From assembly GCF_011386835.1 (NCBI RefSeq), contig NC_088802.1, forward strand, positions 3,038,001 to 3,102,000: a stretch of 64,000 nucleotides of DNA, in the 5' to 3' direction. Below the pieces are notes generated by a model, which was not told the DNA's origin, did no database searches, and was given only the letters and a program-made list of their open reading frames with translations. The stretch is from Chrysemys picta bellii (Eukaryota). Each line of letters opens with the position of its first letter. The first letter of the stretch is position 1. Below are positions 37,486 to 63,688 of this stretch, one piece after another. Made by a program: the position numbers and the translations under genes.

Positions 37486-39745
37486 ATGGGCTTGGCCGTC
37501 TGGGTCCTGCTGACCCTGCTGGCACCTGGCCCGCTGCGGGGTGAGGGGCATTGGCAAGGCTGGGGGGGGGCGGGGAGTGAGGGCCACCGGCAGAACTGGG
37601 GGAGCGGGGCTGGGCTGGCAGGGGCTGTGGGGCAGGAGTGAGGGCCACCAGCAGAGTTGGGGGGGCCAGGGCTGGGCTAGCAGGGGGCTGCGGGTCTGGA
37701 GTAAGGGGCACTGCCATCCCTCTTTTTCCCCCCCTCCCAGGTTCCCCCCCACGGCTGGAGGTGCGGGAGGCCGGGGGTCAGATCCTGCTGCTCTGTGGGG
37801 CCCAGGGCCCCCGGCTGCGCTGGGTCTGGTCCCCCCGATACCCCAAATGCGCCAGCGACCCCGGAGACCAGCTCGAAATCGCCCAGCTGCCCCCCGGGCC
37901 GGAGCCCCCCCTGGACCAGTTCAGGGGGCGCCTGGATCCCCACCCCTCCAGCCTGGGGGCCCTGCTGCTCCGGGACCTGGTCATGAGCGACTCGGGGACC
38001 TTCACGTGCCACGGGGAGTCTGGGGCCGAGCCCCCCATCCAGCTGGAGGTGACAGGAGGTGAGGCCAGACCCCCCTGCCAGCACTGGGGTCACCAGGCGC
38101 TCCCCAGCCAGGGCCCCACCCTGCTCCCCACAGCGTCCCCTGCTGACCCCCATCTGCCCCCCCAGGCTGTCGGAACAACCTCACCGTCTCCTCCAACCAG
38201 ATGTCCCCTTCAGCCCTGACCCTCCGCTGCCAGCGCTGCCCCCTGCTGGCTGGCTCGGCCCAGTTCCGCTGGTTCCTCAACTCCCAGCCCATGGGCAACC
38301 GGGGCTGGGCTACCAAGAGCCAGCTGGGGGCTACCGTGAGGCTGGACCCGTCCCGGCGCGGGGCCTGGGGGCGCTGGGAATGTCACCTCCATGGCACCTC
38401 CTCTGGGGGCTTTGAGTTCTGCCTGGAGCCCCCCCTCGAGGCAGGAGGCGCAGGTAAGATAGTGCCGCACATCCTGCACCCCCCCACACCTGCCCCACGG
38501 TGCCCCCTGCTGGCCCTGACCCTACCTCTGTTCCAGGCCCCAGCTCTGAGTGTTGGATGTGGGTCACGGCACCAATGGCGGTTCTGGGTCTGATCGGCGC
38601 AGGGCTGGGCGCTTGGCACCTGTGGAGACGGAGACGGGGCAGGTGAGTTGGGGACCCGGAGTCCGGGGAGCGGCACCCCCAGCAGGGGATGGAGAGGGAA
38701 GAGAGAGAGAGGGACCCAGGAGTCCGGGGAGCAGAGCCCCAGCCCAGGGTGGAGTGGAAGAGGGAGAGACCCAGGAGCTTGGGGAGTGGTAGCCCCACAG
38801 GGTGGGAGAAGGGACCCAGGAGTCCAGGGATGGGGAGAAACCTGTTTTCATCATGTATCTTTGCCGTTTTCTTCCTTCAGTAACCAACGGAATCAAAACA
38901 GACGAGAGAACGAAACAGGTGAGAGAGAGAAATAAAAACAACCCCCAGCCGCAGGCCTGTTACCCTGGTATCCCACCGTTCCCACCACAGGTCAGAGCCA
39001 TGGGGCCCAGCTACCCCGGTATCCCACCGCTCCCACCATAGGTCAGAGCCATGGGCCCAGCTACCCTGGTATCCCGCCTCCCCAGCTGAGTGCAGAGTGG
39101 ATCCAAGATTTCCTGCCTGAGTAACCAGGTCCGTAACCTTCCCAGCCATGTTCAGTCTGTAAAAATCCACTGGTGGGTAGTTCCACAGGTCAACCGGCTC
39201 CTTGGTTACATTTTCCCCCACACACACACTATCCCATCCCTGCTTTCCTCTTGATTTTCTCCTTCTCTCCATCCTGTGCCAAGGAGCCCCTGGGCCCCGT
39301 TTATCCCCCTTGGAAGAGCTGCAGCTTGGAGCCAAATCGACCGAAAAACATCTTGTGCCCCAGGGTTGGGAAAGAAAAGTGAGAGAGTGAGGGGCACCAG
39401 CAGAGCTGGGGGGAGCCCAGGGCTGGGCGAGCAGGGGCTGTGGGTCAGGAGTGAGGGGCACCGGCAGAGCTGGGGGGCAGGGGGTAGCAAGGGGAAATCT
39501 TTGTAACTTATTGCCCCTTCTCTCCCCAGGTCCCAGGCCCCCTGCTTTATGCTGAAGTCCAGCACCCACTGGTGGCTCGAGCCCCAGCCCCTCCCCCCAC
39601 ACGGCACCACGGTCTATGCCACTATTGTCTGATGCCCCGGTTCCGCTTCCCCCTCCTGTCCACCCCCTTCATGAGTTGCATTAACACCCTGGCTCCCATC
39701 CCAGGTGATGGGAAATTCAGCTGGAAGATGCAAGAAATCTGTTAG
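37486..39745 (+). CDS. Gene A: G6b-like inhibitory receptor (signal, IgV, IgC2, TM, ITIM); last exon frameshifted relative to gene B
   Basis: Exons 37486-37540, 37741-38058, 38166-38453, 38537-38642, 38881-38918, 39284-39378 and 39530-onward. V motifs RWVWSPRYPKC, FRGRL, DSGTFTC; ITIM LLYAEV. One extra C in a poly-C run (~39592-39598) moves TVYATIV-stop (39630-39632) out of frame and the stop to 39743-39745. Confidence 0.85.
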
Positions 39746-40508
39746 AATCTTGTGGTGGGGAGTTCCACAGGTTAACGGATTGTGGCATTAAAATCTGCCC
39801 TTGAAACCCTCGTGTTTGTGATGTGTCACCTTTGTCCTCAAGACCCCACCCTTTGGGCCTGGCTCTGGGGGGTGGGGTTCAGGCAGACGCGGCGCCACTT
39901 CATTTCCTGCCCCAAACGTCTGTGAAGAGCCACCCAGCTGCCCTGCCCCGGAGTTAGCTGCATCTCAGCACTGGCCAAGGGCTCCCTGTATAACCAGCCC
40001 CCGGCGCCCCACTCCAGAGGTGGCTGCATCTCCGCTCCTGGCGAGGGACAGCTGAGAATGAGGAGAATTCACGCTGAGCCACCCGCCTCCATGGGTGGGA
40101 TTTGAACCCGCGACCCCCAGCTTTGCGCCCTGCCGGTTAAGTTATCCTACGCCTGCAGCACCAGGACCAACCACTAGGTGGGGAAAAAACTACGCAAGTG
40201 GGTAAAGCCAGGAGCTAATCGGGTGTTGGGGGCTGGGAGCCAGGACACCTGGGTTCTAACCCCAGCTCGGAGAGGGACGTGGGGCCCAGGGGCTCGAGCA
40301 GGGGGGATGGGAGCCAGGACTCCTGGGTTCTATTTGCAGCAGGGGGCGGCTACTGCCCAGGAGCCCGTGTGATATCCTGTGCTTTGCTAGCAGCAGCTTC
40401 CTCTTCGCTGTAGCCCTGTGAGCAACGCCCCTGCCCAGAGGCAGACGCACCCTGCCCCCGGAACCCCCTCTCCCTGCCCCACGGCTCCCACCCCTCCCCG
40501 GCTCCACC

Positions 40509-41253
40509 ATGTGCCCCCCTCTCCTGCCTCTGGCCCTCGCCCTCCTCACAGCGGTGCCCCCGGGCGCTCAACAAGGTAAGGAGCCGACCGGGCCGTGAGG
40601 CTGGGAACTCGCACTCGGTGGGTGGGGGCTCGGACGGGGCAGCGGGGGGCTCAGCAGGGGGTGCTCTCCCCTGGTCCCAGTGCGCTCAATAAGGAACCCA
40701 ACTCCCAGGGTCCCAGGAGAATCCCAGAGCCAGTGAGCCCATTCCTGTCGCCCTACAAATCTTCCCCCTGCGGCTCCAGCTGGATGCACCCTTCCCCTTC
40801 ACTTCCTGTCTCAAACTTGTGTTCATCTGTTACCCACCCCAGAGGTGGCTGCATCTCCGTGCCAGGCGAGGGGTCCCCGTCACTCTTGTCCCCTCGTAGG
40901 CAGGAACCACTCGGCTCTGGAGTTTGCAGGCCCAGAGGTGACGGCAGAAGCCGGCTCGACTGTGAGTCTGTCCTGCAGCCGGCCAAGACTGACCTGGCAG
41001 TGGATCCCACGGTACTCAGTCTGTGCTGGTGTCAGCGGTGGGATACAGACGATCTACACGGTGACAGTGGCTGGGGCCAGGTACAGCCTGTGGGAGAGAT
41101 TTAACAGGCGGCTGCGTCTCCTACTGGATCAGGGAACCTGAACCTTCATCCTCCAACTGAGAACCCTCCACATGAACGACTCAGGGGCTCTCTTCTGTCC
41201 CTGCCCCAGCCCCAGCCAGAACGCCACGCCGATCTCCGTGACCATCACGCCCG
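40509..41253 (+). pseudogene. C1: truncated G6b-like gene (leader and V exon only)
   Basis: Leader 40509-40575 (MCPPLLPLALALLTAVPPGAQQ). V exon 40930-41253 has an in-frame TGA at 41139-41141. It is followed directly by the duplication junction, so no C2 or TM exons. Confidence 0.88.
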
Positions 41254-41406
41254 GTAACAGCACTGCCGGGGGGCTGGGAACCAGGACAACTGGGTTCTCT
41301 CCCTGTCTCGGGGAAGGGACTGAGGGGGTCTAGTGGCTACAGCAGGGGCTGGAGCGTCTCTCCCTGCCCCCCATCACTGATTCCCTCCCTCTTCTCTGCC
41401 CCCCAA

Positions 41407-41490
41407 ACCCGGAAGCTCCTGCGGCACTTCGAGGCGACAGACTGCACCCCACTGCCCCCCCCAGCCTTCCGTTTGCCCTGGCACTTGTAG
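41407..41490 (+). pseudogene. ABHD16A: Duplicated ABHD16A exon 20 (non-functional copy)
   Basis: RKLLRHFEATDCTPLPPPAFRLPWHL-stop. The splice acceptor ctacAG is changed to ccccaa. A copy of the 3' UTR follows. Confidence 0.93.
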
Positions 41491-42316
41491 CCGGGTGGCC
41501 CCCCGTCATGCCCATCGATTGCACTGACACCCTCACCTCCCCCCCGTCGGTCTGTTTTATATGGAGCCGGGTGCCCCCCTCCCTGCTGTGTGTGAGCCCC
41601 CCCACCCGCCGCACGCTGTAAATCCGCCCCCAGCCCCAAACCTGGGGGGCCCCCCGAGCTGGAGAAATTAACAGTAAAGAAGGTATTTTTTGTACTTCGG
41701 GTCTGTCTGCGGCGATGCAGCCAGCTCTGGGGGGCAGCCCCCCATGCCTGGATCCAGAGCCCGGCCGCCAGGGGGCCCTGACACACAGTGGCTCCACTTT
41801 TCTCCAGCAGGGGGCAGCCCCTCGTTCCCAGGCCTGCCGGGGTGGCCTCTCTGGCGCCCTGGTGTGGGCGGAGACGGGGCGAGGTGGGTGCCTAACGTTC
41901 ATGCTGGCAGCCGCTTCAAAGCAGCCCTGCGGGGGCCTGGGGAACTCCCAGCTACTGGTTGTGGGGCCAGATTGTCTCCCAGGGCGGCTGGCTGCAACGT
42001 GTCCCATGGGGCCTCTTCTCCCCTATGGGTTCTGAGCCCCCTTCGCCAGGGGTCACCCACTTATGCCCCTTGGCCCCTCGTTAGCCTGCGGGACTCTCTC
42101 CTACGCGCCAAGTGTTAATTAACCTGTAGGCCCCTCAGCACCAGGCTCTGATCAAACCAGGACGGGGGGGCTCTCCTGTGACCGGTCCTTAACCTGGGGA
42201 ACTCACTGCCACTAGCCGCAGCCCGTAATTAGAACCCCGCCAATGTCTCCTCTCCAATTAAAACGAGCTCTGCGCTAGGCGGGGGCCTTGTTCACCTGGG
42301 GAACTCCCTGCCACAC

Positions 42317-43459
42317 TGTGATGTTATGAGTGTCATATGCTTCTCAGCTCTCTATGAGCTGGTACGTGAAAACATTATCTATTATCTGTCCTTATCAGTT
42401 TAATATCTCATTGGAAGGTGACAGGGCCAGAAGGAGTTAATTAACTCCCAGACTGACCTGACCCATGGTGAACTGTAGAAACTGGTTAGGAAGATCTGTA
42501 AATGAATAACGATGCCGGCTGCATTTCAGAGCTCTAGAGATCTCAAGGGCAGGTGTTTGCTCAGGTCTTGGGATGTCAGCAAACAAGTCTTGTCTATTGC
42601 TAGAGCTTAAATTCAAAGATCAAAAAGGAAGATTGACATTTATGATGATACTTGAGTGAAGTAGTATTATTGTCTCTAGGTCTCTTTGAAGGTTGTGGTA
42701 ACCTGGATCTGAACTGTTTAATGGATAAATGACCCTGTGCTAATTGCCAGGATGTTGGGGAGAAGGAGTGTTAGGCCTATTGTTTTCTCAGGCCGAAAGG
42801 CTGCTGGAAATGTATAAAAACCCTGGGACATGATCCTTCTTCATCTCAGATCTGCTTTGGGTTTCAAGAGGGGAAACCCTGAGCCACACGGATTGAGATC
42901 CCCAGTCACTGACTGGAGTCACCCTGAATATGAACATTGGACTATAACCTCTGGACTATTTCTAAAAGGACTTTTGGCCACTACAAGCTCATCTCTGCTG
43001 TGTCTGAACCTCAAGAATTGAATTCAAGTCTGTCTGTATATTGATCTTTTAACCAACGCTCTCTCTCGCTTTTCTTTTTTAATAAATTTTAGTTTAGTTA
43101 ATAAGAATTGGCTGTAGTGTGTATTTTGGGTAAGATCTAAGTTATCATTGGACCTGGGTATGTGGCTGATCCTTTGGGATTGGAAGAACCTTTTCGTTTC
43201 TACGATGAGATCAGATTTTCAGTAATCATCATCATATCTGACAGGTGTGTCTGGACGGAGGCCTGAGGCCGGGCTCTTTAAGGGAACTGCGTTGTTTGGA
43301 CGTCTGAGTAACCAGTGAGGTACTACAGAAGCTGTTTTGGGCTGGTTGGTAAATCTAAGTATTGGAATAACCACCAGCTTCTGGGGTTTGTCTGCCTCGT
43401 TTTGTTTGCAGTTCACCCGAATTGAGTGACCTCGGCTGGCTCGCACAGGCACCGTCACA
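42317..43459 (+). mobile_element. Solo LTR (Gypsy-type family)
   Basis: TGTGATG...accgtcaCA termini, TATA-like gtataaaaa, AATAAA ~43081. Inserted in gccacac|aagga, which is empty in copy 1 (37021-37032); ACAC-type target duplication extended by (CA)n. Confidence 0.92.
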
Positions 43460-43735
43460 CACACACACACACAAGGACGGGTTCCCAGAGGCAGCTATCA
43501 GAACTCTCTGCCCCATGAGTCCCTGCCCTTCATCAACAGGGCAGCAACGGCTGGGGCAGTGGGGGGCATTTCAGCTCCTGGGGGGCAGCTCAGTGGGAGG
43601 CCAGCGGTGGCTGCTGTGGTGGAGTTCGCAGGCACAAACAGCAGTGGAGCGGCCGTCGTTAGGTTTCAGAGTGAACGCTGTGTGGCGAAGGGAGCTGGCA
43701 GCAGCTGGCTCAGCTCCCGGCAGACTGGGGCCGGG

Positions 43736-43780
43736 GGAAGTCTGGGCTGGCATGATAAGGGCCCTGGCCCGTGACTCAGC
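43736..43780 (+). promoter_or_regulatory. ETS + GATA + NF-E2/AP-1 composite upstream of gene B
   Basis: GGAAGT 43736-43741, TGATAA 43753-43758, GTGACTCAGC 43771-43780. Confidence 0.6.
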
Positions 43781-43879
43781 CCCGGAGGTGCCAACAATGA
43801 CGGCTCCCCCCATCCGTCCCCCCATCGGTTCCTACCCTGGAGTGAGACGCGGACCCTGGCGGGGAGACGCCTTGAACCG

Positions 43880-46142
43880 ATGGGCTCGGCCGTCTGGGTC
43901 CTGCTGGCCCTGCTGGCGCCCGGCCCGCTGTGGGGTGAGGGGCACTGGCAGAGCTCGGGGGGGTGGGGCTGGGCTGGCAGGGGCTGCGGGTCGGGAGTGA
44001 GGGGCACCGGCAGAGCTGGGGGCAGGGGGGGACTAGTGAGGCTGCGGGTCAGGAGTGAGGGGCACTGGCAGAGCTGGGGGCGGGGCAGGGCTGGGCTACC
44101 AGGGGCTACGGGTCGGGAGTGAGGGGCACAGCTAACACTCTCCCCCTCCCAGGTTCCCCCCCATGGCTGGAGGTGCGGGGGGCCAGGGGTCAGATCCTGC
44201 TGCCCTGTGGGGCCCGGGGTCCCCGGCTGCGCTGGGTCTGGTCCCCCCGATACCCCAAATGTGCCGGTGACCCCGGAGACCAGCTCGAAATCGCCCGTCT
44301 GCCCCCTGGGCCGGAGCCCCCCCTGGACCAGTTCAGGGGGCGCCTGGATCCCCACCCCTCCAGCCTGGGGGCCCTGCTGCTCCGGGACCTGGTCATGAGC
44401 GACTCGGGGACCTTCACGTGCCACGGGGAGTCTGGGGCCGAACCCCCCATCCAGCTGGAGGTGACAGGAGGTGAGGCCAGACCCCCCTGCCAGCACTGGG
44501 GTCACCAGGCGCTCCCCAGCCAGGGCCCCACCCTGCTCCCCACAGCGTCCCCTGCTGACCCCCCATCTGCCCCCCCAGGCTGTCGGAACAACCTCACCGT
44601 CTCCTCCAACCGGACGTCCCCCTCAGCCCTGACCCTCCGCTGCCAGCGCTGCCCCCTGCTGGCTGGCTCGGCCTCCTTCCGCTGGTTCCTCAACTCCCAG
44701 CCCCTGGGCAACCCAGGCTGGGCTACCAAGAGCCAGCTGGGGGCTACCGTGAGGCTGGACCCGTCCCGGCGCGGGGCCTGGGGGCGCTGGGAATGTCACC
44801 TCATTGGCACCTCCTCTCGGGGCTTTGAGTTCTGCCTGGAGCCCCCCCTCGGGGCAGGGGGAGCAGGTAAGATAGTGCTGCATGTCCTGCACCCCCCCAC
44901 ACCTGCCCCACGGTGTCCTCTGCTGGCCCTGACCCTACCTCTGTTCCAGGCCCCAGCTCTGAGTGGGGGATCTGGGTTGTGGCGGCGGTTCTGGGTCTGA
45001 TCGGCGCAGGGCTGGGCGCTTGGCATCTCTGGAGGTGGAGACGGATATGGGGCAGGTGAGTTGGGGACCCGGAGTCCGGGGAGCGGCACCCCCAGCAGGG
45101 GATGGAGAGGGAAGAGAGAGAGGGGGACCCAGGAGTCCAGGGAGCAGAGCCCCAGCCCAGGGTGGAGTGGAAGAGGGAGAGACCCAGGAGCCTGGGGAGT
45201 GGTAGCCCCACAGGGTGGGAGAAGGGACCCAGGAGTCCGGGGATGGGAGTGGGGAGAAACGTGTTTTCATCGTGTATCTTTCCCATTTTCTTCCTTCAGG
45301 AACCGACGGAATCAAAACAGAAAAGAGAACAAAACAGGTGAGAGAGAGAAATAAAAACAACCCCCAGCCGCAGGCCCGTTACCCCCGTATCCCACTGCTC
45401 CCACCATAGGTCAGAGACATGGACCCAGGTATCCCACCGCTCCCACCATAGGTCCGAGCCCTGGGCCCAGCTATCCCGGTATCCCGCCTCCCCAGCTGAA
45501 TGCAGAGCGGATCAAAGATCTCCTTCCTGAGTAGCCGGGTCCATAACCTTCCCAGCCATGTTCAGTCTGTAAGAATCCAGTGGTGGGTAGTTCCAGAGGT
45601 CAACCGGCTCCTTGGTTAGATTTCCCCCCCCCCCCCCGCACTATCCCATCCTTCTTCCCTCTTGATTTTCTCCTTCTCTCCATCCTGTGCCAAGGAGCCC
45701 CGGGGCACCGTTTATGCCCCTTGGAAGAGCCATGGCTTGGAGCCAAATCGACCGAAAGACGCCTTGTGCCCCAGAGTCGGGAAAGAAAAGTGAGCGGGGG
45801 CAGGGCTGGGCTGGCAGGGGCTGTGGGTCAGGAGTGAGGGGCACCGGCAGAGCTGGGCAGCGGGAGGCATGGCTGGGCTGGCAGGGGCTGTGGGTTGGGA
45901 GTGAGGGGCACCAGCAGAGCTGGGGGGGCAGGGCGGGGCAAGCAGTGGCTGTGGGGCGGGAGTGAGGGGCACCAGCAGAGCTGGGGGGCAGAAGGTCGCA
46001 GGGGGAAATCTCTGTAACTTCTTACCCCTTCTCTCCCCAGGTCCCAGGCACCCTGCTTTATGCTGAAGTCCAGCACCCACTGGTGGCTCGAGCCCCAGCT
46101 CCTCCCCCACACGGTGCCACGGTCTATGCCACTATTGTCTGA
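43880..46142 (+). CDS. MPIG6B: Gene B: intact G6b-like inhibitory receptor, 333 aa (signal, IgV, IgC2, TM, ITIM LLYAEV, C-terminal ITSM TVYATIV)
   Basis: Exons 43880-43934, 44153-44470, 44579-44866, 44950-45055, 45300-45337, 45695-45789 and 46041-46142; phases 1,1,1,2,1,0; 1002 nt open. RWVWSPRYPKC, FRGRL, DSGTFTCHG, LLYAEV and TVYATIV parallel recalled human G6b-B (RWVWAPSFPAC, FVGRL, DSGTFFCKG, LLYADL, TIYAVV). The symbol is a family-level assignment; one-to-one orthology is unproven. Confidence 0.88.
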
Positions 46143-46997
46143 CCCCCCACCCGCCCTGGCTCCGCTCCCCTCTCCTCTCCACCCCCTTCATGAGTTGCAT
46201 TCACACCCCTGGCTCCCAGGTGATGGGAAATTCAGCTGGAAGATGCTGGAAATCTCTGTTAAAATCCTGTGGTGGGGAGTTCCGCAGGTTAACAGATTGT
46301 GGCATTAAAATCTGCCTTTGAACCCCTCGTGTCTGTGGTGTGTCTCCTTTGTCCTCAAGACCCCACCCTTTGGGCCTGGCCCCGGGGGGTGGGGTTCAGG
46401 CAGACTCAGCTCCCCTTCAGTTCCTGCCCCAAACGTCTGTGCAGAGCTGCCCCGCCCCAGAGTGAACTGCACTGGCCAAGGGATCCCTGTATAACCAGCC
46501 CCCCTCGCCCCGCCCCAGAGGCGGCTACATCTCCACTCCAGCTGAGGGACATCTGACCATGAGGAGAGTTCAGGCCGAGCGCACCCACCTCCGTGGGCAG
46601 GATTTGAACCTGCGACCCCCAGCTTTGCACCCTGCCTGTTAACAATTATCCTGTAGCACCAGGACAAACCACTAGGTGGGGAAAACTGAGCAAGTGGGTA
46701 AAGCCAGGAGCTAATCGGGTGTTGGGAGCCAGGACACCCGGGTTCTAACCCCAGCTCGGAGACGGACGTGGGGCCCAGGGGCTCAAGCAGGGGGGATGGG
46801 AGCCAGGACTCCTGGGTTCTATTCGCAGCAGAGGGCGGCTACTGAACAAGAGGCCGTGTGATATCCTGTGCTTTGCTGGCAGCAGCTTCCTCTTCGCTGT
46901 AGCCCTGTGAACAACGCCCCTGCCCAGAGGCAGACGCACCCTGTGCCCGGAGACCCCTCTCCCTGCCCCAGGGATCCCACCCCTCCCCGGCTCCACC

Positions 46998-48847
46998 ATG
47001 CGCCCCCCTCTCCTGCCTCTGGCCCTCGCCCTCCTCACAGCGGTGCCCCCGGAGGCTCAACAAGGTAAGGAGCCGACCGTGCCGTGGGGCTGGGAACTCG
47101 CACTCGGTGGGTGGGGGCTCGGCCGGGGCAGCGGGGGGCTCAGCGGGGGGCACTCTCCCCTGGCCCCAGTGCGCTCAATAAGGAACCCAGGAAAATCCCA
47201 GAGCCGGTGAGCCCATTCCTGTCACCCTAAAAATCTCCCCTTGCGGCTTCAGCTGGATGCACCCTTCCCCTTCACTTCCTGTCCCAAACTTGTGTTCCGC
47301 TGTTACCCACCCCAGAGGTGGCTGCATCTCCGTGCCAGGCGAGGGGTCCCCGTCACTCTTGTCCCCTTGTAGGCAGGAACCACTTGGCTCTGGAGTTTGC
47401 AGGCCCAGAGGTGACGAAAGAAGCCGGCTCGACTGTGAGTCTGTCCTGCAACCTGACGGGGCCGAGGCTGAGCTGGCGGTGGGTCCCGCGCTACACAGTC
47501 TGCGCTGGTGTGAGCGGTGGGATAAAGACAATTTAAACAGTGACGGCGGCTGGGGCACACGACACTCCGGAGGGGAGGTTTAAGAAGCGGCTGCATCTCC
47601 TAACCAGTCGGAGAACCCAAACCTCCGTCCTCCAACTGCAACCCCTCCACATGAACGACTCGGGGGTCTTCTTCTGTGTCAGCCCCAGCCAGAACGCCCC
47701 GCCGATCTCCATGACCATCACGCCCAGTAACAGCACTGCCGGGGGGCTGGGAGCCAGAACACCTGGGTTCTCTCCCCAGCTCTGGGAGGGGAGTGGGGGC
47801 TAGTGGTTAGAGCAGGGATCTGGGAGCCAGGACACCTGGGTTCTCTCCTAGCTCTGGAAGGAGGGGAGCAGCAAGCAGCCAGCAGGGGGCGGGTCGTTAA
47901 CTGGATCCATCACGTTTGGCTCTGCCCCCACAGGCTGCCCGGCCAGGGTGTCCATCGCCACGGTCCCCAAGGAGCCGGTCGTGGAGGGAGCGTCTGTGTC
48001 CCTCTCCTGTACCCACTGTGGGGAGCAGGGACCCACATCACCCCCAGCAGGAGGCCCCACGTGGCAGCTCAATGGGGAAACGCTACCAAACTCCACAGCC
48101 CCTCGGATCCTGAGGTCCAACGTGACGATAGAGGGTTTCTCCAGCTCGTTGGAAGGTCTGTGGAGCTGCCACCTGCCTGGGGATCCCCTCCAGTCTGGGA
48201 GCTACTGCCTGGAGCGCGAGCCGGGGGCGCACGGGACCCAGCAGAGCACCAGCCCCACCCCCACCAGTCCAGGTGCATATTCAGCCCCCGTATCCCTGTC
48301 ACAGTCAATGCAGCCACCTCTGGGGCGGGGCAGCTGGGTACCAGCCGCACAGAACAGCGACACCCCAGGGTTGGGGTGGGGAGCGAAGGGGGAGCCTGGA
48401 TGCGATGGGGGGAGGTCGGCTGGGAACCCTGAGTTTGGCTTAGACCTGGGCGCTGGAGTCCACAGCATACCTGTGGGGGAAAACGTACCAAGGGGTTCCT
48501 GTGCTGGCAGCCCCGTGTCCCACCCCAGAGGTGGCTGCATCTCAGCGCCGGGCGAGTGGTCCCTGTATAATCAGCCCCGTGTCCCGCCCCAGAGGTGGCT
48601 GCATCTCAGCGCCCGGCGAGTGGTCCCTGTATAAACAGCCCCGTGTCCCACCCCAGAGGTGACTGCATCTCAGCTCCGGGTTTGTGGCCGCTCCAAGCTA
48701 CTGTCTCCGGTCGCAGGCTCCGGGATGACGGTGCTGGCTGTGCGCTGTGGCCTCGCCTTCCTCTTCTTCAGTGTCACCCTCGGGGCCGTCGGCTACGTGC
48801 ACTGGAAAACCCGGGCCCGGGCGGCCAGCAGGTACTCGCCCCTTTAA
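46998..48847 (+). pseudogene. C2: activating-type G6b-like gene with a nonsense codon in the V exon
   Basis: Exons 46998-47064, 47403-47726 (TAA at 47534-47536 where paralogues have TAC), 47934-48272 and 48717-onward (TM MTVLAVRCGLAFLFFSVTLGAVGYVHW). The expected final acceptor near 49030 is replaced by Gypsy sequence. Confidence 0.85.
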
Positions 48848-49038
48848 CGCCAGCGCCCCATGGTGGGATCCCCCTGCCCTGCTCCCTAGGGCACAGAGCC
48901 AACCCTGACTTCCTGGGCACAGCGCTCCCTGCTGCCCCCGTCCCGCTCCCTGCAGCCCAGCGCCCCCTAGTGCCACCATTTCTCTGCCGTGTAACTCACT
49001 TGACGGCCGTATCCTCCTTCCCTGTCCTTGGCTCCCGT

Positions 49039-49255
49039 AACGCTCCCATTGAGAAGGAACGTTGTGCCATTGTCCGGGCTGTCAAGCAGCTTAAACCCTA
49101 TTTGTACAACAAGAAATTCACCGTGGTGAGCGATCATGGCCCCGCTGCACAAGGCCAAGGGGACCAACTCCAGGCTGCTGGTATGAAATGGACACAATCC
49201 ACATAACGGGGGAGGAGAATATTGTAGCTGATGCGTTGTCCCAGATGGGGAGTCC
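49039..49255 (+). mobile_element. Gypsy pol RNase H remnant
   Basis: PIEKERCAIVRAVKQLKPYLYNKKFTVVSDH, then frameshifted ...GEENIVADALSQ; typical Ty3/Gypsy RNase H motifs. Lies just before a G-rich PPT-like tract and an LTR. Confidence 0.85.
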
Positions 49256-49314
49256 TTGGGACGCACTTAGCGATGTTTGTGCCACCCCTTCCTGCACCAA
49301 TTGTGCGTTGGGGG

Positions 49315-50399
49315 TGTGACGTTCTGAGTGTGGTATAATATCTCATTGGAAGGTGACAGGGCCAGAACGAGTTAATTACCTCCCAGTCTGACCTCACCCA
49401 GGGCCGAACTTTAGAGACTGGTTAGGAAGATCTGTAAACGAACAGAGCTTTGAAATGCAGCCGGCATTGTTAGAGATCTCAAGGGGAGATGTTTGCTCAG
49501 GTCTTGGGATGTCAGCAAACAAGTCTTGTCTATTGCTAGAGCTTTAATTCAAAGACCAAAAAAGAAATATTAACATTTATGAAGACACTGGAGTGAAATA
49601 GTATTATTGTCTCTATGTCTGTTTGAAGGTTGTGGTAACCTGGATCTGAACTGTTTAATGGGTAAATTACCCTGTGCTAATTGCCAGGATGTTTGGGAGA
49701 AGGAGAATTAAGCCTATTGTTTTCTCAGGCCAAGCGGCTGCTGGAAATGTATAAAAACCCTGGGACACGATCCTGCTTCATCTCAGATCTGCTTTGGGTT
49801 TCAAGAGGGGGAAACCTTAAGCCACAAGGATTGAGATCCCCAGACACTGACTGGAGCCACCCTGAATATGGACATTGGACTATAACCTCGGGACTATTTC
49901 TAAAAGGACTTTTGGCCACTACAAGCTCATCTCTGCTGTGGCTGAACCTCAAGAATTGAATTCAAGTCTGTCTGTATATTGATCTTTTAACCAACACTCT
50001 CTCGCTTTTCTTTTGTAATAAATTTTAGCTTAGTTAATAAGAATTGACTATAACGTGTATTTTGGGTAAGATCTAAGTTATAATTGAACCTGGGTGTGTG
50101 GCTGACCCTTTGGGGGTTGGAAGAACCTTTTCTTTTATATGATGAGAGAAGATTTTCAGTAATCATCATCATATCTGACGTGTGTGTCTGGACGGAGGTC
50201 TGAGGCCGGGCACTTTAAGGGAACTGCGTTGTTTGGACGTCTGAGTAACCAGGGAGGTTCTATAGAAGCTGTTCTGGTTTGGTTGGTAAATCTAAGTATT
50301 GGAAGATCCACCAGCGTTTGGGGTTTGTCTGCCCCGGTCTGTTTGCAGTTCACCCTGATTGAGTGACCTCAGCTGGCTCCCACGGGCAGCACCGTCACA
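49315..50399 (+). mobile_element. LTR, same family as 42317-43459 (3' LTR of a deleted element)
   Basis: TGTGACG...accgtcaCA termini, with long near-identical blocks shared with 42317-43459. Confidence 0.92.
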
Positions 50400-54800: not shown

Positions 54801-57394
54801 GATGCAGCACCTCTGGGGTGGGGCACGGGGGCTGTTCATAAAGGGATCCCTCGCCCGGCGCTGAGATGCGTCTGCCTCTGGGGTGGGGCGCGGGGGCTGG
54901 TTATACAGGGATCTCTCGTCCGGCCCTGAGAGGCGGCTGTCTCTGGGGTGGGGGGCGGGGGCTGGTTATACAGGGATCCCTCGTCCGGCGCTGAGAGGCG
55001 GCTGTCTCTGGGGTGGGGCGCGGGAGCTGGTTATACAGGGATCCCTCGTCTGGCGCTGAGATGCGGCACCTCTTGGTGGGAGCTGGGGAACAGCCGCAGA
55101 GAACACCTGCGTCCAGTGCCCTTCAGTGCCCCTTTTCCACCCCTCTCGGCCGGTCGCCTGCAGCCCCAGCTGAGCTGGACTCGGGCGGAGAAGCGAGGGG
55201 GGCGCAGGGCAGGGGGAGATCCACACACCTGGACTGGTGGGGATGGGGCCGGGTGGGGGGCTCTCCTGGGTCCCGTGCCCCCCCGGGTCACGCTCCAGGC
55301 AGTAGTCCCCAGACCGGGGGGGATCCCCAGGCAGGCGGCAGCTCCACAGACCTTCCAACGAGCTGGAGAAACCCTCTATCGTCACCTTGGACCTCAGGAT
55401 CCGAAGGGCTGTGGAGTCTGGTGGCGGCTTCCCATTAAGTAGCCACGTGGGGCCCCCTGCTGGGGGTGACGTGGGTCCCTGCGCCCCACAGGGGGTACAG
55501 GAGAGGGACACAGACGCTCCCTCCCCGACCGGCTCCTTGGGGACCGCGGCGATGGACGCCCCGGCCGGGCAGCCTGTGGGGGCAGAGCCAAACGTGATGG
55601 AGCCACTGAAAGGGCACCCCCTGCTGGCGGCTTCCCCCCCCCCCACCCGGCTGGGCTAGAACCCATCAAAATCCTAAACCACTCCCCACAGCTGGGGAGA
55701 GAACCCAGGCGTCCTGGCTCCCAGCCCCCCCCCTGCTCTAACCACTAGACCCCACTCCCCTGCTAGAGCCAGAAGAGAACCCAAGAGTCCTGGCTCCCAG
55801 CCCCAGTAGAGCTGTTACCGGGCGTGATGGTCACGGAGATCGGCGTGGCGTTCTGCCTGGGGCTGGCACAGAAGAAGACCCCCGAGTCGTTCATGTGGAG
55901 GGTTTGAAGTTCGAAAACGGAGGTTTGGGTTCCCTGATCCGTTAGGAGATGCAGCCACTTCATAAATCTCTCCAGCAGGCTGTTCCCTGCCCCACCCGCC
56001 ATCGCTGTGTAGATCGTCTGTATCCCACTGCTGACACCAGCGCAGACCGGGTAGCGCGGGATCCACCGCCAGCTCAGGCTCGGCCCCGTCAGGTTGCAGG
56101 GAAGTTTCACAGTCGAGCCGGCTTCTGCCGTCACCACTGGACCTGCAAACACCAGAGCGGATGGGTCCTGCCCGACTGGAGAGCCAGGGTCCCCTTACCC
56201 GGCGCTGAGATGCAGCCACCTCTGGGGTGGGGCCCGTATACAGGGATCCCCCGTGACCGTAGAGAACCCCTCCTTGCTAACGAGCAAAGGGGTCGCTGTT
56301 CGGCACCGGTAACCCCTGACAAAGCCCCCGCACGCAGCCCCTGGCCCTGGCAGTATTTCTCCACAGCGGGTTGGGTGAGGCCTCTCATAACGGCTCCCGG
56401 CTGCGGCCCTGCGTCTGAGCGCCGAACGGGGGCTGGGTCCCAGGCCGCGACGACGGACGAGCTTTGCCCGCCTGGCTCCAGACTCCTGGTCAGCCCCTGG
56501 AGGGCAAAGCCAGCTCAGTGCCGGGGGGCGGAGGGGCCAAACCAGAGTCAAGCCGGGATCTGGGGCCTGTTGCTTTGCAGTGTGGACGCAGTTCCGTGGA
56601 CTCGTGAGGCAGGGGAGACTTACAGTCGCCTTTCCCCGCCCCCACTCTCCCCGGGGACCGCACCGGGGACCCGGGCGGCTGGGCTGAGGCCCATGTACCA
56701 GAGCCAGGGTCAGGGTTACAGATGAGTGTGGACGCCCCAGCCCTTGGCTGGCTAGCTCCGGCCAGACCTGGAGTCTGAGGCCCCGCTTCACACCCGGGGT
56801 TGAGCCCACCCCGGTGTAACCGCTCCGAGACGGGTCACTCTTGGGGGTCAGAGGCAGATGTGGGCCTGGGGGGGGCCGCGATGGGCTGCGGAGCCGAACC
56901 AAAGGAACTCGGGGTTCGCTGGGCCCTTGGGGGCAGTGAGCCGGGGATGTTTGGGGAGCCAGTGACCCAGGTGGGAGGTCGCCTTGCGCTCTTCCCCCCC
57001 CAACCCCTCTGCAAGCCAGGCCAGGACTGGCCGTGCGCCGGGGAGGTGGCCGACCAGCCGGCGGTGTCAGGGAATTAGCACTGGCAAGTCTGGGGGACCC
57101 TGAGAAACCTCCCGCAGGGCTGAGATGCAGCCACCTCTGGGGTGGGGCAGCTGGTTATACAGGGATCCCTTTCCTGGGGCTGAGATGCAGCCACCTCTGG
57201 GGCAGGGCGGCTCGTTATACAGGGACCCCTAGGCACTGGGACAAGCCCTGAGCCTCCCGCCCCATTCGCTGCAGGCCTCCAGGCCGAGCCCAGCCCCGGC
57301 CCCACCACGGCCCCGTTTGCTCCTTACCTGCCTGAGCCCCTGGGGGCACTGCTGCCAGGAGGGCGAGGGCCAGGGGCAGGAGCTGGGGGTGCAT
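51851..57394 (-). CDS. C3: intact inhibitory receptor with C-type ectodomain, 366 aa (signal, IgV, IgC2, uncharged TM, ITIM IQYSTL, ITSM-like TIYSEL)
   Basis: Exons 57394-57328, 56142-55819, 55573-55229, 54692-54569, 53862-53816, 53714-53638 and 51967-51851; phases 1,1,1,2,1,0; 1101 nt open. TM ALLPLVGGCAGAALALVLVGAVAVICC-RRRR. Minus-strand AATAAA at 51514-51519. Confidence 0.85.
53150..53625. repeat. GC-rich minisatellite (cccctgctgcccccgtcccgctccccacagcccagcgc family)
   Basis: Tandem units in C3 intron 6; also at 52060-52210. Confidence 0.9.
54720..55075. repeat. ~62-bp minisatellite (ggcgctgagatgcagccacctctggggtggggc..ttatacagggatccctc)
   Basis: About 6 units. Same family at 23330-23450, 27500-27660, 39950-40030, 48490-48680, 57110-57230, 61070-61170 and 62000-62120. 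Confidence 0.9.
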
Positions 57395-57769: not shown

Positions 57770-58608
57770 CACAAGAATGGCCATATTGGGTCAGGCCAAA
57801 GGTCCATCCAGCCCAGTATCCTGGCTTCCCACAGTGGCCAATGCCAGGGGCCCCAGAGAGAATGAACACAACAGATAATCATCAAGTGATCCATCCCCTG
57901 TTGCCCATTCCCAGCTTCTGGCAAACAGAGGCCAGGGCCACCATCCCTGCCCAGCCTGGCTACTAGCCATTGATGGACCTGTCCACCATGACCTTATCTA
58001 GCTCTTTTTTTAACCCTATTACAGTCTTGGCCTTCACAACATCCTCTGGCAAGGAGTTCCCCAGGTTGACTGTTCACTGTGTGAAGAAATACTTCCTATG
58101 TTTTGTGTTAAACCTGCTGCCTAGTCATTTCATTGGGTGACCCCTTGTTCTTGTGTTACGAGAAGGAGTAAATAACACTTCCTTATTCACTTTCTCCACA
58201 CCAGTCATGATTTTATAGACCTCGATCATATCCCACCTTAGTTGCCTCTTTTCCAAGCTGAAAAGTTTCCATTTTATTAATCTCTTCTCATACGGCAGCC
58301 GTTCCATACCCCCTCAGCACTTTTGTTGCCCTTTTCTGAACCTTTTCCAATTCCAATCGATCTTTTTGAGACGGGGCGACCACATCTGCACGCAGTGTTC
58401 AAGGTGTGGGCGTCCCATGGGTTTATATAGCGGCAACATGATATTTTCTGTCCTAGTCTCTCTCCCCTTCTTGATGATTCCCAACATGCTGTTCTGCTTC
58501 TTTGACCCCGCTGCGCTTTGAGTGGATGAGTTCAGAGAACTCTCCACAGTGACTCCAGGATCTTTCTTGCGTGGGAACAGCTCATTTAGTCATTGTATAT
58601 GTCTAGTT
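57770..58608 (-). mobile_element. CR1 LINE 3' fragment
   Basis: Reverse-strand ORF pieces MLGIIKKG..ENIMLPLYK..PHLEHCVQMWSP and LPYEKRL..LFSLEKRQLRWDMIEVYKIMTG; closely related to 18182-19279. Confidence 0.92.
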
Positions 58609-58675
58609 ACACACACATGCGGACACTCAATTACACACACACACACAGCTGGCAGATACACACACAATTAGATAC

Positions 58676-58710
<35 letters not shown>

Positions 58711-59042
58711 TCCAGCAGAGAGACACATGCTGAGCAACCAGGGACACACACCATTGCGCACACACACACTTACACAGCAGTCGCACACACACATAGAGCA
58801 GACAGGGACACACAATTACACACACATACAATTACACAGCAGACACAGAGCAGACAGGGACACACAATTACACACACGTACAATTACACAGCAGACACAC
58901 ACAGAGCAGGCAGGGACTGAGACACACACACAGAGCCAGCAGGGGAGGATTTTGATGGGGGGCTATAGCCCAGCGCAGGGGGGAACAGCCAGCAGGGGCC
59001 GGGCCATTAACTGGATCCATCACATTTGGCTCTGCCCCACAG

Positions 59043-60510
59043 GCTGCCCGGCCGGGGCGTCCATCGCCGCGGGTCCCAAGGAGCCAGTCGAGGAGGGAGT
59101 GTCTGTGTCCCTCTCCTGCACCCCCTGTGGGCCGCAGGGAACCACCTCATCCCCAGCAGGGGGCGCCACGTGGCAGCTCAATGGGGAAATGCTACCAAAC
59201 TCCACAGCCCCTCGGATCCTGAGGTCCAACACGGTGACGATAGAGGGTTTTTCCAGCCGTCTGGAGGGTCTGTGGAGCTGCCGCCTGCCTGGGGATCCCC
59301 CCTGGTCTGGGGGCTACTGCCTGGAGCACGATCTGGTGTGACAGTGCTGCCCGTGGGAGCCAGCTGAGGTCACTCAATCAGGGTGAACTGCAAACAGACC
59401 GGGGCAGAGAAATCCCAAATGCTGGTGGATCTTCCAATACTTAGATTTCCCAAACAGCCCAAAACAGCTTCTACAGTACCTCCCTGGTTACTCAGACGTC
59501 CAAACAACGCAGTTCCCTTAAAGTGCCCAGCCTCAGGCTCCGTCCAGACACACGTCAGATACGATGATGGTTACTGAAAATCTGATCTCATCAGATACAA
59601 GAAAAGGTTCTTCCAACCCCCAAAGGATCAGCCACACACCCAGGTCCAATGATAACTTAGATCTTACCCAAAATACACGTTATAGCCAATTCTTATTAAC
59701 TAAGCTAAAATTAATTAGAAAAGAAAAGAGAGAGAGTGTTGGTTAAAAGATCAATATACAGACAGACTTGAATTCAATTCTTGAGGTTCAGACACAGCAG
59801 AGATGAGCTTGTAGTAGCCAAAAGTCCTTTTAGAAATAGTCCAGAGGTTATAGTCCAATGTCCATGTTCAGGGCGGCTCCAGTCAGTGACTGGGGATCTC
59901 AATCCTTGTGGCTCAGGGTTTCCCCTCTTGAAACCCAAAGCAGATCTGAGATGAAGCAGGATCATGTCCCAGGGTTTTTATACATTTCCATCAGCCGCTC
60001 AGCCTGAGAAAACACTAGGCTCAACTTTCCTTCTTCCCAACATCCTGGCAATTAGCACAGGGTAATTTATCCATTAAGCAGTTCAGATCCAGGTTACCAC
60101 AACCTTCAAAGAGACATAGAGACAATAATACTACTTCACTCAAGTATTATCATAAATGTCAATCTTCCTTTTTGATCTTTGAATTAAAGATGCCACAGGG
60201 GAGGTCGGCTGGGAACCCTGAGTTTGGATTAGACCTGGGCGCTAGAGTCCACAACATACCTGTGGGGGAAAACGTACCAAGGAGTCCCTGTGCTGGTAGC
60301 CCCGTGTCCCGCCCCAGAGGTGGCTGCATCTCAGCTCCGGGTTCGTGGCCGCCCAAGCTTCTGTCTCCAGTCACAGGCTCCGCGCCCGGCAGCGGCTGGG
60401 GGGTGACGGTGCTGGCTGCGCGCTGTTCCTCAGCGCCACCCTCAGAGCCGTCGGCTACCTGCACTGGAAAACCCGGGCCCGGCAGGCCAGCAGGTACCCG
60501 CCCCTTTAAC
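59043..60510 (+). pseudogene. C4: activating-type G6b-like remnant (C2 exon and TM exon only)
   Basis: C2 exon from 59043 is cut at 59337 by an antisense LTR. The TM exon from 60377 has an out-of-frame deletion right after ...GCG CGC TGT. No leader or V exon upstream. Confidence 0.85.
59337..60190 (-). mobile_element. Truncated LTR, same family as 42317 and 49315, antisense
   Basis: tgtgacagtgctgcccgtgggagcc is the reverse complement of the LTR 3' end. Homology stops near 60190, where C-gene intron 3 sequence resumes. Confidence 0.9.
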
Positions 60511-60869: not shown

Positions 60870-63688
60870 ATGCGCCCCCAGCTCCTGCCCCTGGCCCTCG
60901 CCCTCCTGGCAGCAGTGCCCCCGAGGGCTCAGGCAGGTAAGGAGCAAACCCAGCCGTGGGCCTGGCCTCTCGCCAAGTGAGGCTGGGGATGGGCTCGGCC
61001 GGGAGGCCTGCAGCAAACAGGGCGGGAGGCTCAGGGCTTGTCCCAGTGCCTGGGGGTCCCTGTCTAACCAGCCGCCCCGCCCCAGAGGTGGCTGCATCTC
61101 TGCACCGGGGGAGGGCTCCCTGTATAACCAGCTGCCTCACCCCAGAGGTGGCTGCATCTCAGCCCCAGGGGAGGTTTCTCAGGGTCCCCCAGACTTGCCA
61201 GTGCTAATTCCCCTGACACCGCCGGCTGGTTGGCCACCTCCCCAGGGCACGGCCAGGCCTGGCCTGGCTTGGAGAGGGGCTGGGGGCTCGGGGGAGGGAG
61301 TGGAGGGCAGCCTGACCCACCGGGCGTAACATGTCTCGGAGCGGCTGAGCCGGGATGGGTTCACACTCGGGCGTGAAGCGGGGCCCACACTCTGGGCAGG
61401 ACCGCGCTGCAGCGGAAGCCGGGGGCTACATTCGCCCGGGGCTGGGGTGTCCACACTGGTTTGTAACCCCCACCCAGACTCCGGTGTCTCAACGATGTCT
61501 GGCCACCCGTGTCCCAGACACCCCGGCCGCACCTGCCAGGGGGGTGGGAAGGCGACTGGCGCCCCTCCCTCCCCCGCCCACGCGTGTCACTAGCCCGGTG
61601 GGGCTGCGTCCACACTGCAAAGCAACGTGCCCCGGATCCTGGCTTGACTCTGGCCACTCTGTCCCCAGGACTCTGGTGTCGGGCGATTCGGGTGTAGCCG
61701 GAGCCTCGGTGGCACAGTCAGGGCTGCTGCACGCTGGGCCCAGCACAAGACAGCCCGAGCGATGGGAGCCGGCTCCTGGGGGCCGTGTGCCGTGATGCCC
61801 GTGGGCGGCTTGTCCTGCCTGCAGCCTGGCGCGCTCCTCAGGGACAGACGCAGGGCCAAAGCCGGGAACTGTTGTTAGCTGCCTCGTCCAGCCCACTGCG
61901 GATAAATACTGCCAAGGCCAGGGGCTGCGTGCGGGGGCTTTGTCAGGGGTTATGGGTATCGAACGGCGACCCCTTTGCTCGTTAGCAAGGAGGGGCTTAG
62001 GGTCACAGGGGGATCCCTGTATGAATGTGCCCCATCCCAGAGCTAGCTGCATCTCAACACAGAGCAAGGGGATCCCTATATAATCAGCCACCCCTCCCCA
62101 GAAGTGGCTGCATCTCAGTGCCGGGTAAGGGGTCCCCGTCTCTCCAGTGCTCTGTTGGGCAGGACCCATCAGGCTCTGGTGTTTGCAGGCCCAGAGGTGA
62201 CGGCAGAAGCCGGGTCGACTGTGAAACTTCCCTGCAACCTGACGGGGCCGAGGCTGAGCTGGCAGTGGATCCCGCGCTACCCGGTCTGCGCTGGTGTCAG
62301 CGGTGGGATACAGACGATCTACACAGTGATGGCAGCTGGGGCACACAGCACTCCGGAGGGGAGATTTCAGAAGCGGCTGCGTCACCTAATGGCTCAGGGA
62401 AACCGAACCTCCGTCCTCGAAGTCCAAACCCTCCACATGAGCGACTCGGGGACCTTCTTCTGTGCCAGCCCCAGTCAGAACGCCTCGCCGATCTCCGTGA
62501 CCATCATGCCCGGTAACAACCCTGCCCGGGGGCTGGGAGCCAGGACTCCTGGTTCTCTCCCCGGCTCTGGAAGAGGTTCATTTTGATGGGGGGCTATAGC
62601 CCAGCGCGAGGGGAAGCGGAAAGCAGCCAGCAGGGGGCGGGTTGTTAACTGGATCCATCACTTTTGGCTCTGCCCCCACAGGCTGCCTGGCCGGGGCGTC
62701 CATCAAAGGGGTCCCCAAGGAGCTGGTCATGGAGGGAGCGTCTGTGACCCTTTTCTGTACCCCCTGTGGGGCGCAGGGACCCACGTCACCCCCAGCAGAG
62801 GGCACCACGTGGCAGCTCAATGGGAAGCTGATATCGAACTCTCCAGCCCTTCGGATCCTGAGGGCCAACAAAATGACGATAGAGAATTTCTCCAGCCGGT
62901 TCGAGGGTCTGTGGAGCTGCCGCCTGCCTGGGCATCCCCCCCGGTCTGGGGACTACTGCCTGGAGCGCGACCAGAGTGGGCACAGGACCCAGCAGAGCAC
63001 CAGCCCCACCAGTCCAAGTTTGTATTCAGCCCCCGTGTCCCTGTCAGTCAATGCGGCCACCTCTGGGGTGGGGAAGCTGGATACCAGCCTCACAGAATGG
63101 CGACACCCCAGGGTTGGGGTGGGGAGCGAAGGGGGAACCTGGATGCGATGGGGGGAGGTCGGCTGGGAACCCTGAGTTTGGATTAGACCTGGGCGCTGGC
63201 GTCCATAACATACCTGTGGGGGAAAACGTACCACGGGGTCCCTGTGCTGGCAGCCCCGTGTCCCGCCCCAGAGGTGGCTGCATCTCAGCTCCGGGTTTGT
63301 GGCTGTTACAAACTTCTTTCTCACGTCGCAGGCTCCCCGCCCGACAGCGGCTGGGGGGTGACGGTGCTGGCCGTGCGCTGTGGCCTCGCCTTCCTCTTCC
63401 TCAGCGCCAGCCTCGGGACCATCTACTATGTGCACTGGAAAACCCGGGCCCGGCCGCCCAGCAGGTACCCGCCCCTTTAACGCCAGCGCCCCCTGGGGGC
63501 TCCCCCTGCCCTGCTCCCTGGGGCAATGGGGCAGCCCCGACTGCCAGGGGACAGCGCCCCCTGCTGCCCCCGCCTGCACAGCACCCCCTAGCGCCACCTT
63601 GTGGGTCAGCTACCACATTTCTCTGCTGTGTGGCTCACACAATGTCTCTCTCCCTCCTTTCCTGTCTTGCAGGCGCCAGCGGGACTGA
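60870..63688 (+). CDS. C5: intact activating-type G6b-like receptor, ~291 aa (signal, IgV, IgC2, Arg-containing TM, short tail)
   Basis: Exons 60870-60936, 62189-62512, 62682-63017, 63332-63464 and 63673-63688 (tail ...RPPSRRQRD-stop), or read-through to TAA at 63478-63480 (...RPPSRYPPL). TM VTVLAVRCGLAFLFLSASLGTIYYVHW. The exon 3 donor is weak (CAA|gtttgt). Confidence 0.82.

Follow-up and report, generated by a model that had tools for sequence, protein, structure and literature searches.

A 64,000-nucleotide stretch of DNA (the window) was found to contain, between positions 37486 and 63688, a cluster of immunoglobulin (Ig) receptor genes related to G6b (MPIG6B). The window originates from the turtle Chrysemys picta bellii, given that the exons of gene B of the cluster are identical to LOC112061172 isoform X4 (P0001) and that gene C3 corresponds to P0041. 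The cluster comprises seven units, six of which have an exon for a V domain (V exon), while C4 has only the exon for a second Ig domain (Ig2). Four units look intact (A, B, C3 and C5), and the remaining three, C1, C2 and C4, survive as pseudogenes or fragments. As set out below, the units probably represent two old lineages of the G6b family, G6b itself (A and B) and a C type which appears to form a paired set of inhibitory and activating receptors.

Seven receptor units

A six-frame scan located the V signature W-x-W-x-PRY-x-x-C in six V exons, at positions 37821, 40995, 44233, 47474 and 62260 on the forward (+) strand and at 56042 on the reverse (-) strand. The second motif, DSG-x-F-x-C, stands in the same frame in five of the six; that of C1 lies past an in-frame stop. 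An earlier note on this DNA had listed seven related V plus Ig2 genes or remnants with a shared V signature, which agrees with the six V exons and the Ig2 unit of C4.

Gene A (37486..39632, +) is of the G6b type (clade 1 of the tree described below) and consists of a leader exon (37486-37540), a V exon (37741-38058), an Ig2 exon (38166-38453), an exon for the transmembrane segment (TM; 38537-38642), a cytoplasmic exon (39283-39381) and a last exon (39530-39632). Gene B (43880..46142, +) is an intact gene of the same type with leader (43880-43934), V (44153-44470), Ig2 (44579-44866), TM (approximately 44949-45055), cytoplasmic (approximately 45694-45798) and last exon (46041-46142). Both encode an uncharged TM. 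The last exon of gene B reads LLYAEV...TVYATIV-stop in a single frame. In gene A an additional C in a run of C residues (+1) places LLYAEV and TVYATIV in different frames. Since the Malaclemys orthologue of gene A (P0002) follows the shifted frame as well, the frameshift is probably real and not an assembly slip. Malaclemys possesses both an A-type (P0002) and a B-type protein (P0003).

Gene C3 (51851..57394, -) is an intact gene of inhibitory type, whose product is identical to P0041, a 366-aa NCBI protein with the name 'Rv2082-like'. Its seven exons encode the leader (57394-57328), the V domain (approximately 56146-55817), Ig2 (approximately 55613-55230), the TM (54696-54571), two cytoplasmic parts (53864-53817 and 53715-53638) and the C-terminus (51967-51851). 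The TM GGCAGAALALVLVGAVAVICC is uncharged and the last exon contains IQYSTL and TIYSEL. The uncharged TMs and two-tyrosine tails of A, B and C3, with the motifs of A out of frame, were thus as the earlier note had described them. In C3 the intron that separates the last exon from the cytoplasmic exons is occupied over about 1.7 kb by a GC-rich block of tandem repeats.

Gene C5 (60870..63688, +) is an intact gene of activating type with 291 codons in five exons (60870-60936; V, 62189-62512; Ig2, 62682-63017; TM, 63332-63464; last, 63673-63688, ending in RRQRD-stop), and all four introns are of the GT-AG type. Its TM GVTVLAVRCGLAFLFLSASLG contains an arginine and is followed by a 13-aa tail, KTRARPPSRRQRD, without any signalling motif. 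C3 and C5 lie 3.5 kb apart as head-to-head inverted copies with the C4 fragment in between. Their nucleotide identity amounts to 84-89%, introns included. The ectodomains of the two proteins are 75% identical over 214-217 aa, yet they are joined to opposite signalling ends.

The remaining units are damaged. C1 (40509..41255, +) is a C-type remnant with a leader exon (40509-40575) and a V exon (approximately 40926-41255) in which an in-frame stop occupies 41139-41141; the remnant breaks off at a duplication boundary near 41330. C2 (46998..48847, +; leader 46998-47064) is a pseudogene of the activating type with an arginine-containing TM (Arg-TM). Its Ig2 exon is intact and its V exon is interrupted by a stop at 47534-47536 (TI-stop-TV). 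Both in-frame stops had been overlooked in the earlier note. The TM exon of C2, MTVLAVRCGLAFLFF...HWKTRARAASR, ends at 48832, and the TMs of C2 and C5 are both of the VLAVRCGLAFLF type. Arginine TMs with tails of at most 13 aa had been proposed for the two genes: the arginine is present in both and the C5 tail has 13 aa, but for C2 a terminal RQRD exon was not found downstream of the TM exon. A retroelement RNaseH/reverse transcriptase-like open reading frame (ORF; EKERCAIVRAVKQLKPYLYNKKFTVVSDH) at approximately 48980-49300 (+) directly follows the C2 TM exon where this terminal exon would be expected. C4 (59042..60506, +) is a fragment consisting of an Ig2 exon (59042-59332) and the frame-broken copy of an Arg-TM exon (approximately 60300-60506) that had been noticed before; it has neither a leader nor a V exon. 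The Ig2 exon of C4 is truncated by the third copy (59336-60189, -) of an interspersed repeat measuring some 860 bp, whose three copies are 92-93% alike; the other two lie at 42606-43460 (+) and 49542-50399 (+).

Self-comparison of the window revealed a tandem segmental duplication of 5.3 kb (36013-41347 versus 41330-47817, 87-92% identity), which starts inside the last exon of ABHD16A, the gene upstream of A, and ends just past a C-type V exon. These boundaries indicate that the unit of A and C1 is a copy of the unit of B and the 5' part of C2, with C1 truncated. An orphan last ABHD16A exon with its 3' flank (41330-42276, +), 92% identical to 36013-36975, lies between C1 and B and opens the second duplication unit. 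Three further C-type proteins of Chrysemys picta bellii (P0042, P0020 and P0033) have no coding sequence in the window. The cluster therefore probably extends past position 64000.

Family membership and age of the two lineages

The V domains were compared with the Pfam G6B model PF15096, which has a cut-off of 24.3 bits. Gene A (32.8 bits), C5 (41.5 bits) and C3 (P0041, 33.4 bits) scored above this value and the C1 remnant (21.2 bits) below it. Among structures in the PDB, human G6b-B (6r0x_E) was the top match of both A (E value 4.7e-9) and C5 (2.2e-10), and the next matches had E values above 1e-6. By these profile and structure matches the A/B and C genes are assigned to the G6b family, as had been proposed. 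The earlier note had also considered that the V domains might group with another family. An origin from CD300, pIgR or Siglec is disfavoured, as the best-scoring model was the one specific to G6B and the best-matching structure that of G6b-B. The V exon of a G6F-like gene in the same window showed no significant similarity to the ectodomains of A, B, C2, C3 and C5 (BLASTP E value at least 0.04), and this similarity test ruled out a G6F origin of the A and C genes.

The cytoplasmic tails of A and B resemble that of human G6b. The tail of human G6b, DLDQEPSLLYADLDHLALSRPRRLSTADPADASTIYAVVV, contains LLYADL...TIYAVVV-stop (PMC3501490). Correspondingly, an ITIM (immunoreceptor tyrosine-based inhibitory motif) followed by an ITSM (immunoreceptor tyrosine-based switch motif) stands at the C-terminus of B, and the same motifs are present, frameshifted, in A. 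C3 has an ITIM and an ITSM of other sequence; C5 and C2 contain neither. The ectodomain consists of V plus Ig2 in all turtle, squamate, amphibian and fish members, in contrast to the single Ig domain of the mammalian form. The second domain of the A type was not recognized by Pfam. An AlphaFold model of the A-type ectodomain showed two Ig domains (predicted local distance difference test score, pLDDT, 91.5; predicted template modelling score, pTM, 0.85). Its Foldseek matches were V plus C2 receptors, for example CEACAM1, domains D1-D2 of LAG3, and CAR. The template modelling scores of these matches were low (0.3-0.4) because the inter-domain angle differs, so they back only the reading as two tandem Ig domains.

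Word-indexed protein searches, with single queries or with an alignment of 13 sequences, returned turtle proteins only, and other vertebrates were reached by an exhaustive profile search. This latter search detected relatives with two Ig domains and with ITIM and ITSM in the tail well outside the turtles, namely in lizards, snakes, an amphisbaenian, alligator, salamanders, a caecilian, coelacanth, bichirs, sturgeons, paddlefish, gar and bowfin, and distantly in lamprey. A maximum-likelihood tree was calculated from 48 non-mammalian ectodomains. Clade 1 (support 90/90) unites turtle A/B with one amphibian gene and with squamate proteins which NCBI has named MPIG6B. In clade 2 (98/85) the C type of turtles is joined by genes of squamates and alligator, a second amphibian gene and both coelacanth genes. 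A/B and C sequences are only 27-31% identical. In approximately unbiased (AU) tests, monophyly of all turtle genes was rejected (log-likelihood lower by 79.6, p 3.6e-5), and so was monophyly of all reptile genes (log-likelihood lower by 26.7, p 0.0045). In Rhineura floridana (L001, 10001-34097) a clade 2 gene lies beside a 'G6b' gene, tail to tail and 3.4 kb apart, and in two salamanders the clade 1 and clade 2 genes have consecutive accession numbers.

Because both clades span squamates and amphibians, both monophyly constraints were rejected and the two lineages are neighbours in Rhineura and Pelodiscus, the C type has to be regarded as an old tandem paralogue of G6b and not as a reptile expansion. 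Judged by these sequence relationships, G6b in the strict sense probably comprises A and B only. Clade 1 is probably the MPIG6B lineage on the basis of its tail, of a profile score against human G6b (6r0x) that is 10 bits higher for the clade 1 V domain (56.2 bits) than for that of clade 2 (46.0 bits), and of the NCBI naming. The inhibitory C lineage can be traced to the coelacanth and probably to ray-finned fishes. We know of no C-type paralogue and of no activating G6b counterpart in mammals.

Probable pairing of the C-type receptors and its proposed explanation

The C type carries what by sequence is the signature of paired receptors, and this signature recurs among turtles. Activating forms are annotated in Chelonia, Natator, Lepidochelys, two species of Mauremys and Pelodiscus, and inhibitory ones in Chelonia, Natator, Caretta, Pangshura, Gopherus, Mauremys mutica and Pelodiscus. 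Identity of the Arg-TM module amounts to 72% within the hard-shelled turtles, and in Pelodiscus the module can be recognized as LALRCSL..LFL.AS.GA. In Pelodiscus sinensis (L003, 1-17100) the gene order is ABHD16A, identified by its ABHD16_N and Abhydrolase_1 Pfam matches, G6b (+), two activating Arg-TM C genes (+) and one inhibitory C gene with an ITIM (-). In Mauremys an activating C gene (+) is followed by an inhibitory one (-), as in Chrysemys. The order shared by Pelodiscus, Mauremys and Chrysemys implies that this unit predates the split of the softshell turtles.

The activating and inhibitory ectodomains of one lineage are each other's nearest relatives (support 100/96 in Pelodiscus and 100/91 in Chelonia), and a single clade of all activating ectodomains was rejected (p-AU 6.5e-8). 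The Arg-TM exon, unlike the ectodomains, is common to turtles generally. Homogenized ectodomains together with a shared Arg-TM exon are the concerted-evolution pattern of paired receptors. The coelacanth has one inhibitory gene and one short-tailed gene with a lysine in the TM; homology of this lysine TM to the turtle Arg-TM was not demonstrable at 22% identity.

Transcription of C5 was followed in four sequencing runs that were guessed to be RNA, none being recorded as such; they provided short, repeat-dominated contigs and no tissue information. The first intron of C5 had zero depth in these runs. Contigs reached the 3' end of the C5 V exon with 0-1 mismatches. One contig joined V to Ig2 (62511/2 to 62681/2, GT..AG), another joined the Ig2 exon to the Arg-TM exon at 63329-32, and further contigs covered the TM exon. 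These few short contigs, which resolve neither level nor tissue, make the evidence for C5 transcription suggestive but thin. The pairwise ratios of nonsynonymous to synonymous substitution rates (dN/dS) of C-type exons ranged from 0.64 to 1.75, and from 1.05 to 1.75 among C2, C3 and C5. Between the C3 and C5 V exons the ratio was 1.64 (synonymous differences, Sd, 6.5; nonsynonymous differences, Nd, 31.5), and the Arg-TM exon differed from a Mauremys copy by Sd 1 and Nd 10. Such single-exon counts are too small to tell diversifying selection from relaxed constraint.

We consider it probable that the cluster represents two old, tandemly linked lineages of the PF15096 family, G6b (A/B) and the paired C set, both built from a V domain and a second Ig domain. 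The first lineage would be the turtle counterpart of MPIG6B and, by analogy with the human protein, would presumably recruit SHP-1/SHP-2 after phosphorylation by Src kinases. In the second lineage (C1-C5) receptors of the C3 type, with an uncharged TM, an ITIM and an ITSM, should inhibit through recruitment of SHP-1/2. Receptors of the C5 type join nearly the ectodomain of C3 to a TM whose arginine is conserved and to a motif-less tail of 13 aa, which suggests signalling via an adaptor with an ITAM (immunoreceptor tyrosine-based activation motif). The adaptor would most likely be of the FcR-gamma type because the arginine is located in the outer third of the C5 TM. By analogy with other paired receptors the C3 and C5 types may recognize the same ligand. 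The basic unit of ABHD16A, G6b, activating C (+) and inhibitory C (-) would be older than the split between softshells and other cryptodires, and in Chrysemys it would have been enlarged by the 5.3-kb tandem duplication and an inverted duplication, leaving three dead copies. Gene conversion or repeated exon exchange may have kept the C-type ectodomains similar within each lineage.

Several observations weigh against this explanation. The coupling to an adaptor is read from one residue, and the assignment of MPIG6B to clade 1 from the tail, a 10-bit profile difference and the NCBI naming. The splice joints of C5 come from single low-depth contigs in runs that are not on record as RNA, and one of these contigs belongs to another organism code at a likeness of at least 93%, so that it may stem from an orthologue or a paralogue. 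No purifying selection was visible in the single-exon dN/dS values, which are based on small samples. An exact C5 protein did not turn up in the protein database, where the best match is 86% identical. Finally, human G6b-B contacts heparan sulfate through Arg60, Lys109 and Lys58 (PMC6742478), and in alignments to human G6b-B these residues are not conserved in A, which has P-G-D-Q and C-H at the aligned positions, or in C5, which has G-G-I-Q and C-A.

Some of these points could also be explained if the Arg-TM genes of the C5 type were not activating receptors at all but decaying by-products of duplication, decoys or soluble ligand binders without ITAM coupling. This would fit the fact that, of three Arg-TM copies in the window, two (C2 and C4) are dead, the missing exact protein model of C5, the dN/dS values at or over 1 and an isoform of Mauremys reevesii that skips the TM exon (P0022 versus P0032). 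We nevertheless regard it as unlikely. The 291-aa ORF of C5 is intact with canonical splice sites, and the contigs across its splice joints extend to the Arg-TM exon. Moreover, intact Arg-TM genes with the core R-C/W-G-L...LFL occur in at least six other turtles, with two copies in Pelodiscus.

A more far-reaching proposal makes C5 an FcR-gamma-coupled activating receptor of reptile thrombocytes, which would stand in for GPVI and have C3 and G6b as inhibitory partners. We know of no GPVI outside mammals. Receptors such as GPVI/FcR-gamma, OSCAR, Fc-alpha-RI and LILRA resemble C5, which likewise combines a short tail with two Ig domains and has its arginine in the outer TM part, but they are unrelated to it in sequence. 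This likeness is drawn from established knowledge of these receptors. If the proposal were correct, the G6b locus would be an ancestral module for activation and inhibition of haemostatic cells, of which mammals retained only the inhibitory half in one-domain form; at present we think it rather improbable.

The earlier note had described the whole cluster, including the C type, as a paired system expanded from MPIG6B within turtles or reptiles. The paired signature of C3 and C5 was borne out, and the G6b signature and PF15096 match of all V domains, the position of the genes together beside ABHD16A and the recent origin of some copies (A/B and C1/C2 duplication units, 87-92% identical) are in keeping with such an expansion. 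A reptile origin has become very improbable, given the low identity between A/B and C (27-31%), the non-turtle genes in both clades (squamate, alligator, salamander and coelacanth in clade 2, squamate and amphibian in clade 1), the rejection of turtle-only (p-AU 3.6e-5) and reptile-only (p-AU 0.0045) groups and the adjacency of the lineages already in Rhineura. It is practically out of the question that the multiplicity of genes stems from the assembly, through side-by-side placement of alleles or collapsed repeats. The region is GC-rich with many repeats and minisatellites, and the best DNA runs contain only some half of the words sampled from C5. The copies, however, are not alleles: 11-20% of their nucleotides differ, both orientations occur among them and their TM and tail exons are not the same. 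Moreover, the same gene order occurs in independent Pelodiscus and Mauremys assemblies, and Malaclemys has both P0002 and P0003.

Compared with known systems, the two old lineages of the preferred explanation resemble different receptors. Mammalian MPIG6B (G6b-B), an inhibitory receptor of megakaryocytes and platelets, shares the PF15096 V domain with the turtle genes, whose top structural match is 6r0x, and shares with A and B the class III site near ABHD16A and LY6G6 and the tail with ITIM...ITSM-stop. The turtle proteins differ from it in a second Ig domain with extra cysteines, in the presence of two G6b copies and in lacking its heparan-sulfate contacts Arg60, Lys58 and Lys109. The C type resembles the paired Ig families KIR, LILR/PIR, SIRP, Siglec-5/14, CD300, chicken CHIR and CEACAM1/3. 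Clustered genes with near-identical ectodomains, an ITIM/ITSM member beside a short-tailed member with a charged TM, lineage-wise homogenization of ectodomains, frequent pseudogenes and changes in copy number are common to them. The differences are the G6b scaffold of V and Ig2 and the location in class III of the MHC (major histocompatibility complex) instead of a region like the leukocyte receptor complex. LY6G6F (G6f) and the teleost G6f-like receptor are Ig receptors of platelets or thrombocytes and share with the turtle genes the class III neighbourhood, but the G6F-like V domain of the window has no significant similarity to A or C ectodomains. The teleost G6f-like protein is a collagen receptor with its own ITAM and four Ig domains and belongs to a different family (PMC3528668).

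In mammals G6b-B acts as a key brake on the production and activation of platelets and has so far been studied as a lone, single-domain gene restricted to mammals. In literature searches on G6b/MPIG6B in combination with turtle, reptile, paired receptor, thrombocyte, zebrafish or Xenopus, no account of G6b paralogues outside mammals or of activating receptors resembling G6b came up, in agreement with the earlier note, which knew of none. A survey of the zebrafish MHC from 2005 listed C6orf25 as not found. Paired Ig receptors are a well-known pattern and no new principle is involved here, but the G6b scaffold had not been linked to this pattern before. The main added value therefore is an evolutionary re-reading of G6b. 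Its ancestral form would have had two Ig domains, and it would possess an old neighbouring paralogue, present from coelacanth to reptiles and lost in mammals, which in turtles has formed an inhibitory/activating pair since before the divergence of softshell and hard-shelled turtles. A family encoded in class III would thereby join the list of paired receptors, and comparative haematology and immunology would gain concrete candidate genes for nucleated thrombocytes or leukocytes. Predicted proteins for B, C3 and many orthologues are already available at NCBI under inconsistent automatic names (Rv2082-like, pknG, CEACAM1, CAR homolog, cadherin-related 5 and MOG), and these misleading names could be put right.

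Flanking genes and repeats

The class III marker ABHD16A (BAT5; 24925..36170, +) lies upstream of the cluster and ends 1.3 kb before gene A. Its exon translations run from MAKLLSCVLGPRLYRVYRDR through THCTPLPPPAFRLPWHL-stop; the true C-terminus is FEATHCTPLPPPAFRLPWHL, with the stop at 36170. Further upstream are a two-Ig gene similar to G6F on the reverse strand (approximately 21000-23300, V exon 23287-22916) and a gene on the forward strand (15238-15746) for a Ly6/uPAR-domain protein with a C-terminus of the glycosylphosphatidylinositol-anchor type. With ABHD16A, G6F-like and Ly6 genes close together, the locus represents the G6 neighbourhood within MHC class III, where the earlier note had placed it. 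The gene order is unlike that of human, ABHD16A being located here between G6F and G6b.

Tandem blocks of high GC content were observed at 10.6-11.7, 16.8-17.2, 20.2-21.0, 22.6-23.0 and 52.0-53.7 kb and in the first introns of A and B. They are open in several frames (GAPAELGG.GWAGRGCGSGVRGTGRAGG or PALPVPLTPDPQPLLAQP). Fragments resembling the ORF2 tail of long interspersed nuclear elements (LINEs) of the CR1 type (IMLPLYK.MG.PHLEHCVQMWSP) occur at 58314-58547 (-) and 18454-18768 (+). The segment from 57.7 to 58.5 kb showed very high depth in the presumed RNA runs, which fits an expressed repeat.

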